Of a DNA stretch of 64,000 bases, positions 7,948-25,511 are shown one piece after another. Every line of letters begins with the position of its first letter. The stretch's first letter is position 1. Under the pieces are notes generated by a model that was given only the letters and a program-made list of their open reading frames with translations, ran no database searches and was not told the origin of the DNA. The position numbers and the translations under genes are program-made. Source of the stretch: Macrostomum lignano. Lineage: Eukaryota. The stretch lies in the NCBI GenBank assembly GCA_002269645.1, contig NIVC01000296.1, positions 124,001 through 188,000 on the forward strand, written 5' to 3'.

Positions 7948-8421
7948 CTACCAGGCCTCATCAGCGGCGTCTTCGCCCTCCTCGTCAGGCAGCCGAGGAC
8001 AGTCGAAGCAGCGCACCTGCTCAGCATCCGCCAACTGCTGCTGCTGCTGGTCCCGCCTGGCGTACCGGCCAACGGCAGCCAGTTGCTGGACGTTGAGAAT
8101 TTGAAATTTCCTGATCCTATCGGCCATAGCCTTGAGGGAGAAGCCCATCTGAGAGCCCTCCAACTGGTCGAACTTGTTCACCCGCAGCAGGTGATAAGAG
8201 AAGTCTAACAGTTCGAATCGGCGCTCCTGACCGAGCAGCACCAGCAGCGCGGCGCCGGCCCATTGAAGGCCTTCGCCGAATAGCTCTTCGACGGTGAACT
8301 CGTGCTCACCTGGCGGGATGCAGCAGGCGAACTGGATCGCCGACCAGATCCGGTGGAATTCCAGGCACTCGTCTACGAACATCACGCCGTTCTTGGGCGT
8401 CTCCTGCACTGTCCACACGGG
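7948..8421 (-). CDS. CYFIP: CYFIP exon 13 (terminal)
   Basis: ctcag|CCC GTG TGG; [21 protein letters not shown]...stop. Confidence 0.95.
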   Translation of the reverse strand, partial: PVWTVQETPKNGVMFVDECLEFHRIWSAIQFACCIPPGEHEFTVEELFGEGLQWAGAALLVLLGQERRFELLDFSYHLLRVNKFDQLEGSQMGFSLKAMADRIRKFQILNVQQLAAVGRYARRDQQQQQLADAEQVRCFDCPRLPDEEGEDAADEAW

Positions 8422-23400: not shown

Positions 23401-25511
23401 CCCCTGTGTTGTGCCCTCAGTGTGCCCCCTGTGTTGTGCCCTCAGTGTGCCCCCCGTGTTGTGCCCTCAGTGTGCCCCCCTGTGTTGTGCCCTCAGTGTG
23501 CCCTCAGTGTGCCCAGTGTTGTGCCCTCAGTGTGCCCCGTGTTGTGCCCTCAAAGTGCCCCGTGTTGTGCTCTCAGTGTGTTCCCCCCCCCTGTGTTGTG
23601 CTCTCAGTGTGTTCCCCCCCCCTTGTGTTGTGCTCTCAGTGTGCCCCCCCCTGTGTTGTGCTCTCAGTGTGCCCCCCCCCTGTGTTGTGCCCTCAGTGTG
23701 CCCCGTGTTGTGCCCTCAAAGTGCCCCGTGTTGTGCCCTCAGTGTGTTCCCCCCCCCTGTGTTGTGCCCTCAGTGTGTCCCCCCCCCCTGTGTTGTGCCC
23801 TCAGTGTGTTCCCCCCCCTGTGTTGTGCCCTCAGTGTGTTCCCCCCCCTGTGTTGTGCCCTCAGTGTGTTCCCCCCCCCCTGTGTTGTGCCCTCAGTGTG
23901 TCCCCCCCCTGTGTTGTGCCCTCAGTGTGTTCCCCCCCCCCTGTGTTGTGCCCTCAGTGTGCTCCCTCCCTCTGTGTTGTGCCCTCAGTGTGCTCCCTCC
24001 CTCTGTGTTGTGCCCTCAGTGTGTTCCCCCCCCTGTGTTGTGCTCTCAGTGTGCCCCCCCCCTGTGTTGTGCTCTCAGTGTGCCCCCCCCCTGTGTTGTG
24101 CTCTCAGTGTGCCCCCTTTTTTTGTGCCCTCAGTGTGCCCAGTGTTGTGCCCTCAGTGTGCCCCGTGTAGTGCCCTCAGTGTGCCACATTTGAGGTGTAG
24201 TACTCTTTAAACCTTTGCCAACCACTGACAGTTTGCTTACCTGGAACAGCATAAAATTCATAAGCTTAACAGCGTACGGCTGCAACACTTCAACAGTGCG
24301 CTCGTGTATTTCTCCTTTATTAGACTGCTCGTTCGACCTAATCTGGGGCAGGGCTCGAGAACACGAGCGCCAGGTGTACAGCATCACGGCGTATTCCTCG
24401 CCTTCTTTTAGCAGCTCCGTCATCTCGGCGTGCGAGGCCGCCTCCTCCATGTACTTGGCCACGCCCACTACGTAAGCGCTGCGGTCCTGTAGGATTCAAT
24501 TGTGAGGCTGCGTGCTTTACACTGCTCAGGGAATCTATGAGGATGAATATCCCTCTCATAACTGCTCAGGGAATCTATGAGGATGAATATCCCTCTCATA
24601 ACTGCTCAGGGAATCTATGAGGATGAATATCCCTCTCATAACTACTCAGGGAATCTATGAGGATGAATATCCCTCTCATAACTACTCAGGGAATCTATGA
24701 GGATGAATATCCCTCTCATAACTACTCAGGGAATCTGAGGATGAATATCCCTCTGATAACTACTCAGGGAATCTATGAGAATGAATATCCCTCTCATAAC
24801 TACTCAGGGAATCTATGAGAATGAATATCCCTCTCATAACTACTCAGGGAATCTATGAGAATGAATATCCCTCTCATAACTACTCAGGGAATCTATGAGA
24901 ATGAATATCCCTCTCATAACTACTCAGGGAATCTGAGGATGAATATCCCTCTCATAACTACTCAGGGAATCTATGAGAATGAATATCCCTCTCATAACTA
25001 CTCAGGGAATCTGAGGATGAATATCCCCTTTCATTACTGCTCAGGGAATCTATGAGGATGAATATTTCTCTCATAACTTCTCAGGGAATCTATGAGAATG
25101 AATATCCCTCTCATAACTACTCAGGGAATCTGAGGATGAATATCCCTCTCAAAACTGCTCAGGGAATCTATGAATATGAATTTCCCTATCAGGACTTCTC
25201 AGGAAATCAATGACGATGATCCCCATCAGGACTTCTCAGGGAATCTATGAGGATGAATACCCCTATCACGACTTCTCAGGGAATCTATGAGGATGAATAT
25301 CCCAACTGCTCATAGAAGAAGTACTGCTCTAGGAAGATCAATAAAAAACTCTAACCTGAAAATTTCTATCTGCATCATGCTTCAATAGCAGTGACACAGG
25401 TGCAGCCTCAATGTTGTAGACATCATCAGACGTGTCTAGGTTGTCTAATAGGTCTACATTCCTGATGGCATCCACAATGGTCACCTGACCATCTGATTGT
25501 GCAGCAGACAT
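7948..25511 (-). CDS. CYFIP: Cytoplasmic FMR1-interacting protein (CYFIP/Sra-1, WAVE complex), complete 13-exon gene, ~1298 aa
   Basis: Exons 25356-25511, 24241-24486, 19171-19389, 18288-18566, 17150-17479, 15664-15897, 15154-15405, 13706-14155, 12761-13129, 11307-11627, 10027-10305, 9033-9320, 7948-8421 join via GT-AG into 3897 nt, colinear with CYFIP motifs ([57 protein letters not shown]). Confidence 0.96.
8462..8985 (-). mobile_element. tRNA-derived SINE (family B) in CYFIP intron 12 with a tandemly triplicated head
   Basis: A box TAGCCTAGTTG and B box GGTTCGATTCC in 92/92/90-bp units (8699-8985), then GTCCTTGAGCAAAACACTTAAC, resembling the central motif of CORE/V-type SINEs. Confidence 0.75.
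9033..9320 (-). CDS. CYFIP: CYFIP exon 12
   Basis: aacag|GAA...TCG|gttagt; [12 protein letters not shown]. Confidence 0.92.
9358..9962. repeat. 21-bp minisatellite (CTCTGTCCCATTCCTGTCACT)n, CYFIP intron 11
   Basis: Tandem units. Confidence 0.95.
10027..10305 (-). CDS. CYFIP: CYFIP exon 11
   Basis: cccag|ATG...CAG|gtgaga; [11 protein letters not shown]. Confidence 0.92.
10402..11252. repeat. 21-bp minisatellite (GATTGGGTCTGTTGTGTCTAT)n, CYFIP intron 10
   Basis: Tandem units with variants. Confidence 0.95.
11307..11627 (-). CDS. CYFIP: CYFIP exon 10
   Basis: cgcag|GTG...GCC|gtgagt; [21 protein letters not shown]. Confidence 0.92.
11650..12697. repeat. 24-bp minisatellite (GTAGGGATAATTAGGGAACTGTCA)n, CYFIP intron 9
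   Basis: About 40+ units. Confidence 0.95.
12761..13129 (-). CDS. CYFIP: CYFIP exon 9
   Basis: tccag|ATA...GAG|gtgagc; [15 protein letters not shown]. Confidence 0.92.
13170..13700. repeat. 44-bp minisatellite, CYFIP intron 8
   Basis: TGATCTTGCC recurs at 44-bp spacing (13261, 13305...). Confidence 0.95.
13706..14155 (-). CDS. CYFIP: CYFIP exon 8
   Basis: ttcag|CTG...CAT|gtaat; [23 protein letters not shown]. Confidence 0.92.
14410..15120. repeat. Compound (GACA)n/(CA)n microsatellite, CYFIP intron 7
   Basis: GACA and CA runs with interspersed variants. Confidence 0.95.
15154..15405 (-). CDS. CYFIP: CYFIP exon 7
   Basis: gtcag|ATA...CAG|gttggg; [18 protein letters not shown]. Confidence 0.9.
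15664..15897 (-). CDS. CYFIP: CYFIP exon 6
   Basis: cgcag|GTG...CAG|gttagt; [13 protein letters not shown]. Confidence 0.92.
15940..17070. repeat. 22-23-bp minisatellite (GGATTCTACAGGTAGTTTATGGA)n, CYFIP intron 5
   Basis: Tandem units. Confidence 0.95.
17150..17479 (-). CDS. CYFIP: CYFIP exon 5
   Basis: cgcag|GTT...CAG|gtgtgt; [13 protein letters not shown]. Confidence 0.9.
17558..18075. repeat. 31-bp minisatellite (GCAACCCTTAGTGCAATTTTAGCGAAATGTT)n, CYFIP intron 4
   Basis: Tandem units. Confidence 0.95.
18288..18566 (-). CDS. CYFIP: CYFIP exon 4
   Basis: cacag|GTG...AAG|gtacgt; [13 protein letters not shown]. Confidence 0.92.
18620..19112. repeat. 44-bp GC-rich minisatellite, CYFIP intron 3
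   Basis: GAAGCGGCGGCCCAGCTGAAG recurs at 44-bp spacing. Confidence 0.95.
19171..19389 (-). CDS. CYFIP: CYFIP exon 3
   Basis: tctag|GCT...TCG|gtgagt; [21 protein letters not shown]. Confidence 0.92.
19462..24185. repeat. 4.7-kb minisatellite GTGTTGTGCCCTCAGTGTG(C)nT, CYFIP intron 2
   Basis: Units of ~24-31 bp with a variable C tract; source of the long VLCPQCAP ORFs. Confidence 0.96.
24241..24486 (-). CDS. CYFIP: CYFIP exon 2
   Basis: tacag|GAC...CAG|gtaagc; [14 protein letters not shown]. Confidence 0.93.
24525..25300. repeat. 40-bp minisatellite, CYFIP intron 1
   Basis: CTCAGGGAATCTATGAGGATGAATATCCCTCTCATAACTG units. Confidence 0.95.
25356..25511 (-). CDS. CYFIP: CYFIP exon 1 (start; not in ORF track)
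   Basis: [23 protein letters not shown]...NFQ|gttag resembles the CYFIP N-terminus (QVTLEDALSNVDLL). Confidence 0.88.

Follow-up and report, generated by a model that had tools for sequence, protein, structure and literature searches.

Phase-0 introns, which lie between codons, are in general excess among eukaryotes. Under the protosplice-site model, reportedly due to Dibb and Newman and to Sverdlov et al., introns are gained at (A/C)AG|G sites. Introners and introner-like elements are known in Micromonas, fungi, and dinoflagellates, and Krauss et al. 2008 are said to have described near-intron pairs and intron sliding. For such pairs and sliding events, Drosophila cases are also on record (PMC2891723). 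A review concluded that protosplice sites do not fully explain the phase-0 excess (PMC3488318), and genome-wide analyses place flatworms, Macrostomum lignano included, among the spiralians that retain few ancestral introns (PMC7854359; PMC4085046). In this study, we analysed a gene of the CYFIP (Sra-1/PIR121) family encoded in a 64,000-nucleotide stretch of the M. lignano genome (contig NIVC01000296.1, positions 124,001 to 188,000; this whole stretch is referred to below as the window). All 12 introns of the gene lie in phase 0, a pattern that had been singled out by a model working from the DNA letters alone (the sequence-only reading). We report that the introns of this gene have undergone near-complete replacement and that its phase pattern, as it stands, is only mildly unusual. 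The CYFIP case agrees with these published findings that flatworms have lost ancestral introns on a large scale.

The CYFIP gene extends from ATG to stop at 25511..7948 on the minus strand and consists of 13 exons and 12 introns. Its exon chain was built from the ATG at 25511 and the exon lengths given by the sequence-only reading, using open segments between AG and GT, and one consistent chain was obtained: exons 1 to 4 at 25511-25356, 24486-24241, 19389-19171, and 18566-18288 (156, 246, 219, and 279 nt); exons 5 to 8 at 17479-17150, 15897-15664, 15405-15154, and 14155-13706 (330, 234, 252, and 450 nt); and exons 9 to 13 at 13129-12761, 11627-11307, 10305-10027, 9320-9033, and 8421-7948 (369, 321, 279, 288, and 474 nt). 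The product of 1298 amino acids (aa) was residue-for-residue identical to GenBank PAA86042.1 (BOX15_Mlig029510g2), annotated on the same M. lignano contig. This entry belongs to an annotation based on RNA-seq data and assembled transcriptomes (PMC5730564); because the two models are identical, the junctions are transcript-supported, and those proposed from the DNA alone held against transcript-based evidence. Exact mapping of the protein onto the genome left a single possible junction for each of the 12 introns. All 12 had GT..AG ends and were in phase 0, and all 13 exon lengths were divisible by 3. Two further copies of the gene in the assembly (g1 on locus L007 and Mlig009871g1 on locus L008), 99.6-99.8% identical, had introns at the same 12 positions and in the same phases. 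With PAA86042.1 and both copies in agreement, the 13 exon lengths and 12 phase-0 introns that had been proposed proved exactly right.

The family assignment was examined at the protein level. The product matched Pfam FragX_IP (PF05994) with E=2.1e-299 over profile positions 5-883 of 886, and its N-terminal part matched CYRIA-B_Rac1-bd (PF07159) with E=1e-7, above the curated cut-off. It was collinear with human CYFIP1, a member of the WAVE regulatory complex (PDB 3p8c_A; 1343 bits, query 8-1283 versus chain 3-1245), and in this alignment, inspected to about residue 1011, the first ten junctions were gap-free. In a multiple alignment the eleventh junction was likewise ungapped, and an indel of 2-3 residues was found just after the twelfth. 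The anchoring of the junctions by protein homology was thus upheld by both alignments. No U12-type intron, as judged by AT-AC termini or a /GTATCCTT donor, was present among the 12; in every donor, a U2-type sequence rich in A/G/T came after the GT (for example gtgagt, gttagt, or gtaagc), and every acceptor was AG. According to the GenBank record, no other gene is annotated within 10 kb of CYFIP.

Intron positions were then compared with those in the CYFIP genes of Haliotis asinina (mollusc), Owenia fusiformis (annelid), and Trichonephila clavata (spider). Annotated proteins were mapped exactly onto the DNA and aligned by MAFFT, and a position was scored as ancestral when it shared both alignment column and phase with introns in these distant phyla. 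The outgroup genes contained 27, 28, and 22 introns, respectively, with 18 positions common to all three and 27 found in at least two. M. lignano CYFIP keeps two of these 27 positions, after aa 134 (FMLFQ|ARAIG) and after aa 572 (PNSTQ|LYMVR), and has lost the other 25. Its remaining ten introns (after aa 52, 207, 300, 410, 488, 722, 845, 952, 1045, and 1141) matched no outgroup intron. For nine of the ten, the surrounding alignment was ungapped and strongly conserved, which makes their assignment as new positions robust; the site after aa 1141 directly precedes the 2-3 residue indel, yet it lies 117 nt from the nearest ancestral position. Because ten positions match no mollusc, annelid, or spider intron, we conclude that M. 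lignano CYFIP has undergone near-complete, lineage-specific intron turnover, and this conclusion is well supported. Turnover or gain of this kind had been put forward by the sequence-only reading, and that part of it stands: neither different junctions nor a set of ancestral positions was found, the model being identical to PAA86042.1 and only 2 of the 12 positions being ancestral.

Two further observations were made on the CYFIP genes retrieved for comparison. The best match outside Macrostomum (52% identity) was a full-length, 1260-aa eukaryotic CYFIP without any intron, encoded at 501-4283 of locus L005 on a 27.6-kb contig of ENA metagenome ERZ25070167. In the Owenia CYFIP locus (L003, ~31700-34700 and 50250-53960), about 20 tandem copies identical to CYFIP exon sequence were seen, with periods of 143, 78, and 145 bp and corresponding to the exons for aa 717-752, 1138-1158, and 1158-1196; these copies represent a satellite of exon origin or, alternatively, an artefact of the assembly.

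M. lignano also possesses a CYFIP paralog (P0122; locus L001, 10001-18553) that is 69% identical to the window CYFIP. This gene has four introns and a first exon of 815 codons. Its introns are located at aa 814 (phase 1), aa 930 (phase 2), aa 1069 (phase 2), and aa 1194 (phase 0), and none of the four positions is shared with the window CYFIP or with the outgroups. For three of them, the nearest ancestral position is only 5-8 nt away (P=0.006), with the protein conserved across the shift, and these three may represent intron sliding or near-intron pairs. When the new intron sites of the window gene were compared with the corresponding sites in the paralog, where introns are lacking, five showed a G-ending codon (CAG, AAG, GAG) in the window gene and its A-ending synonym in the paralog; examples are CAG|G, AAG|G, and GAG|G versus CAA|G, AAA|A, and GAA|G. 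This wobble contrast fits an adaptation to the splice consensus, which would be cheapest in phase 0. The paralog is adjoined by a gene of 178 aa, for which the coordinates alone admit dozens of exon solutions.

For the 12 phase-0 introns, the sequence-only reading had calculated a probability of 1/4096. The arithmetic is right for an expectation of one half, but that null is too low, as the expectation specific to this gene is about 0.65-0.70. Outgroup CYFIP introns are in phase 0 in 64-73% of cases, and the 27 conserved positions are distributed 18/3/6 over phases 0/1/2. Moreover, 46 of the 68 AG|G sites (68%) in the coding sequence of the window CYFIP, whose GC content at third codon positions (GC3) is 0.71, fall at codon boundaries; the shares are 70% in the paralog and 67% in the model of the neighbouring RIM-BP gene. 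At an expectation of 0.65-0.70, 12 of 12 has P=0.006-0.014 and 10 of 10 new introns has P=0.013-0.03; when the expectation is taken from the AG|G share (68%), P is about 0.01-0.02. Among introns that lie off ancestral positions in both paralogs, 11 of 14 are in phase 0 (P=0.30 at 0.68). The three near-identical CYFIP copies are not independent observations, and the phase pattern was selected after the fact. The all-phase-0 pattern is thus only modestly beyond what sequence composition and chance supply. With such an expectation, and with paralog introns in phases 1, 2, 2, and 0, a restriction of gains to codon boundaries, as had been implied, is not established. Codon usage was considered as the cause of the phase difference between the two paralogs and was rejected (AG|G sites in phase 0, 68% versus 70%).

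The exon sequence at the junctions was also inspected. The sequence-only reading had noted (C/A)AG|G at many junctions; the strict motif is indeed present at 5 of 12, and AG ends the exon at 8 of 12, but half of the junctions (6 of 12) lack AG|G. For the new introns alone, the counts are 4 of 10 for strict MAG|G and 5 of 10 for AG|G. Because the motif is mostly missing at the same sites in the paralog, where no intron is present, it may have arisen at the new introns after their gain.

Taking these data together, we consider it probable that CYFIP is a gene after near-complete intron replacement in which the phase-0 excess stems from composition bias, a general phase-0 preference, and chance. 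In the Macrostomum lineage, 25 of the 27 conserved positions were lost and 10 introns appeared at new positions. The new introns would have been fixed where the exon flanks already suited, or could easily mutate to, the 5' splice-site consensus, a suitable flank being G or AG before the intron and G after it. A GC3-rich coding sequence would put such sites mostly at codon boundaries, and this bias, combined with the general eukaryotic phase-0 excess and moderate luck, could yield 12 of 12. Neither a codon-aware mechanism nor selection on exon skipping would be needed. Private minisatellites, prone to rapid expansion and contraction, would later have filled the introns.

Tandem arrays make up 45% of the window, and in 11 of the 12 CYFIP introns one minisatellite private to that intron, with a unit of 4-92 bp, accounts for 47-97% of the length. 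Little unique sequence flanks the arrays in these introns, typically 35-80 nt on the 5' side and 18-95 nt on the 3' side. Of the two introns at ancestral positions, both of which all three outgroups share (all 12 introns are given here on the minus strand and are in phase 0), intron 2 (19390..24240, after aa 134) is 97% composed of a 27-31-bp array of about 170 units, and intron 7 (14156..15153, after aa 572) contains about 179 units of an (ACAG)n array. The introns at new positions are intron 1 (24487..25355, after aa 52), 90% of which is a 40-bp minisatellite (24521-25303); intron 3 (18567..19170, after aa 207), with a 44-bp array; intron 4 (17480..18287, after aa 300), with a 31-bp array, 18 nt upstream of a now-empty ancestral position; intron 5 (15898..17149, after aa 410), with 50 units of a 23-bp array, 12 nt from an empty ancestral position; intron 6 (15406..15663, after aa 488), which at 258 bp is the sole CYFIP intron without a tandem array; intron 8 (13130..13705, after aa 722), with a 44-bp array and the weakest donor, CAT|gtaata (gtaataatcgg); intron 9 (11628..12760, after aa 845), with a 24-bp array; intron 10 (10306..11306, after aa 952), with a 21-bp array, also 12 nt from an empty ancestral position; intron 11 (9321..10026, after aa 1045), with a 21-bp array; and intron 12 (8422..9032, after aa 1141), in which a tRNA-like unit of 92 bp is repeated 3.1 times and part of a dispersed repeat is also present. 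The 92-bp unit (8699-8985) carries a T-arm-like GGTTCGA motif and was not called as a tRNA; a tRNA-Val(AAC) gene is located downstream of CYFIP at 6106-6178 on the minus strand.

The same array build was found in all four introns of the paralog (L001 12444-18199) and in about half of the RIM-BP introns. Because the two ancestral CYFIP introns carry arrays too, arrays are not markers of new introns. Among the three CYFIP copies, which are about 99.7% identical, array length varied 2-7 fold (intron 2, for example, measured 4851, 1701, and 667 bp), the flanks were 90-100% identical, and the positions were constant. Minisatellite filling is therefore a property of the genome and is not specific to the new introns.

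Other genes in the window were examined for intron phase. A BK-channel beta-subunit-like gene (Pfam CaKB) at 31295..32310 on the plus strand has one intron (31678-32028), which is in phase 0 as the sequence-only reading had stated. The window also contains the last exon of a C2H2 Sp/KLF-like gene; the sequence-only reading had put its acceptor in phase 0, but the frame stays open on the 5' side of every acceptor candidate, which leaves that phase putative. For RIM-BP, an ab initio model was obtained at 37792..58388 on the minus strand; counted from the acceptor at 58388, it comprises 19 exons separated by 18 introns, of which 14 are in phase 0 and the other 4 in phase 1. It was produced by an exon-chaining gene finder that used a codon-usage score and splice matrices from 16 known M. 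lignano introns and that penalised tandem arrays. At one setting the gene finder reproduced the CYFIP model exactly, and it also reproduced the paralog with phases 1, 2, 2, and 0; because these phases were recovered, the gene finder has no built-in preference for phase 0. The RIM-BP model is supported by Pfam domains (Ig_RIMBP2, RIMB1_N, two SH3, and fn3) and by tblastn anchors, its junctions are ab initio only, and its 5' end and the exons at 53238-46814 are uncertain. The count of 15/3/0 over phases 0/1/2 given previously agrees with this independent model in the number of introns and in the lack of phase 2, but the model gives 14/4/0. Similarly, the claimed absence of phase-2 introns is true in this window but not of the species, given the two phase-2 introns of the paralog. 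When the RIM-BP FN3 exons were searched against proteins, the sole match was a 328-aa M. lignano fragment. Of the first RIM-BP SH3 domain, only the C-terminal half (AKSGFAYTELSDGRHGYIPSNY) was found in window positions 46814-49535 on the minus strand; the N-terminal half is either missing or located in an exon that escaped both homology and the model. A long CAG/poly-Q tract is present at about 47573-47641.

Several observations weigh against composition and chance as a full account of the phase pattern. Weaker nulls, based on G|G (56%) or AG| (55%), give P of about 0.001 for 12 of 12. Only 5-6 of the 12 CYFIP junctions are AG|G, so the protosplice null of 0.68 may be too generous, and about 6 of the 18 RIM-BP donors follow AG. 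The three near-ancestral paralog introns may be displaced ancestral ones, in which case the clear gains would number 11, with 10 of them in phase 0 (P=0.09), and the split in phase between the two paralogs (10/0 versus 1/3) has a Fisher P of 0.011. The ten positions count as new relative to the mollusc, annelid, and spider genes of the comparison set. In Oikopleura, the classic case of turnover, intron phases are uniform (PMC3488318), and turnover alone therefore does not predict a phase-0 excess. Over the window as a whole, 27 of 31 introns are in phase 0 and none of the 31 is in phase 2 (P=0.006-0.024 at an expectation of 0.65-0.70); with RIM-BP junctions predicted ab initio, this tally is suggestive of a mild extra bias toward phase 0.

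A rival reading is a genuine lineage bias, with Macrostomum gains fixed almost only between codons, beyond composition, through either the gain mechanism or selection for symmetric exons. All ten new CYFIP introns are in phase 0; in addition to the 27 of 31 in the window, zero phase-2 introns in 31 has P<0.001 if phase 2 makes up 20%; many junctions have a weak exonic splice consensus, and a protosplice null may therefore overstate the phase-0 expectation; and the gene finder that recovered the paralog phases was unbiased. On the other hand, two of the paralog's introns are in phase 2 and one is in phase 1, and the four isolated phase-1 introns of the RIM-BP model produce asymmetric exons. The tally also comes from three genes in one window chosen post hoc, with ab initio RIM-BP junctions, and we know of no intron-gain mechanism that reads codon phase. 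With regard to selection, the sequence-only reading had proposed that frame-preserving exon skipping is favoured amid introns full of decoy splice signals. With a splice-site matrix trained on true sites, which favours true sites and makes the test lenient, every intronic GT in CYFIP scored below the true donor, and the true acceptor was matched or beaten by just 7 AG sites, confined to introns 4, 10, and 12 of the twelve. Strong decoys are thus not in excess, and a general need for frame-preserving skipping is disfavoured because RIM-BP and the paralog contain asymmetric exons; the proposal is not supported. We regard a lineage bias as unlikely, and it is equally doubtful that gains in the Macrostomum lineage are almost all phase 0 and essentially never phase 2, well beyond composition and opposite to Oikopleura.

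As to where the new introns came from, they might have arisen from an introner-like mobile element or by tandem duplication of AGGT-containing exon segments, with the minisatellites as the remnant. Intron 9 has a 9-nt direct repeat, AG|GTGAGCT, at either junction, which all three gene copies have retained (chance ~1e-3 over 12 introns); judged from its sequence, it is the type of repeat that duplication or repair would be expected to leave. In intron 8, the donor runs without a break into the first unit of the 44-bp array, and in 11 of the 12 introns a single array takes up most of the length, with little unique sequence beside it. However, at the other 11 CYFIP introns the AGGT tandem-duplication signature did not exceed 4 nt, no more than the splice consensus, and their ends were unlike the adjacent exon ends. 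All-against-all blastn of 30 introns with arrays masked revealed no introner-like shared family, and the sole sequence common to several introns was a dispersed ~246-bp repeat, located in RIM-BP introns 14 and 18, with a fragment in CYFIP intron 12 (introns at 8422-9032, 38146-38709, and 45114-46813). Derivation of the array units from flanking exons, by a duplication birth followed by expansion, was considered and rejected, as the units had no matches to flanking exons or coding sequence beyond chance. Arrays also occur in both ancestral introns, and an origin of this type seems improbable to us. Literature searches found nothing specific on intron gain or introners in Macrostomum. Similarly little is to be expected of the idea that many of the new positions are ancestral introns moved slightly, by sliding or as near-intron pairs. 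The placement of three of the four paralog introns (P=0.006) and of three window introns, 12-18 nt from now-empty ancestral positions, is in its favour, but 3 of 10 window introns within 18 nt is at chance level, pooling both genes gives P=0.14, and the other seven lie 32-117 nt from any ancestral site. Furthermore, the protein between the old and new sites is conserved, which a simple splice-site shift would not preserve; we hold such movement to be a poor prospect for most sites. Finally, the sequence-only reading had been made without transcript evidence, and a wrong gene model, or ancestral positions combined with a plain chance outlier, could in principle lie behind the pattern. This is very improbable: the model equals a transcript-derived GenBank protein, both further copies share its structure, the alignments with human CYFIP1 (first ten junctions) and with the multiple set (last two) agree, and only 2 of 12 positions are ancestral.

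We therefore favour near-complete replacement with composition bias, general phase-0 preference, and chance. The gene constitutes a transcript-backed, single-gene case of near-total intron replacement, with 25 positions lost and ten gained, in a flatworm that serves as a regeneration model; comparison of its three recent copies shows minisatellite content turning over fast within introns of stable position. If a phase-0 bias of new introns were true genome-wide, it would contrast with Oikopleura and offer a test of insertion versus retention as the source of phase-0 introns; it would also point to gain or fixation tied to codon boundaries, for example through strong selection for symmetric exons amid introns dominated by unstable minisatellites.

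When compared with known systems, M. lignano CYFIP resembles introner-bearing genomes in having many lineage-specific introns in one gene, but its introns lack a common sequence family and a repeat resembling a target-site duplication was found at intron 9 only; terminal inverted repeats were not searched for. Like near-intron pairs, several M. lignano introns, especially in the paralog, lie 5-18 nt from empty ancestral positions, whereas most window introns are far from ancestral sites and the association is significant for the paralog only. The gene is in line with the protosplice model in that half of the CYFIP junctions are AG|G, that 68% of such sites are in phase 0, which predicts a phase-0 excess, and that a wobble G in the intron-bearing gene stands against an A in the paralog lacking those introns; the other half of the junctions, in contrast to the model, are without the motif. 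As with the lineage-specific turnover of Oikopleura dioica, Caenorhabditis, flatworms, and rotifers in Malin-type reconstructions, most ancestral positions have been lost and new ones have appeared in a gene whose protein is highly conserved. CYFIP differs from these fast-evolving turnover lineages in that its introns are not shrunk, measuring 0.26-4.9 kb and being filled with minisatellites, and from Oikopleura in that its new introns are all in phase 0 rather than uniform in phase (PMC3488318).

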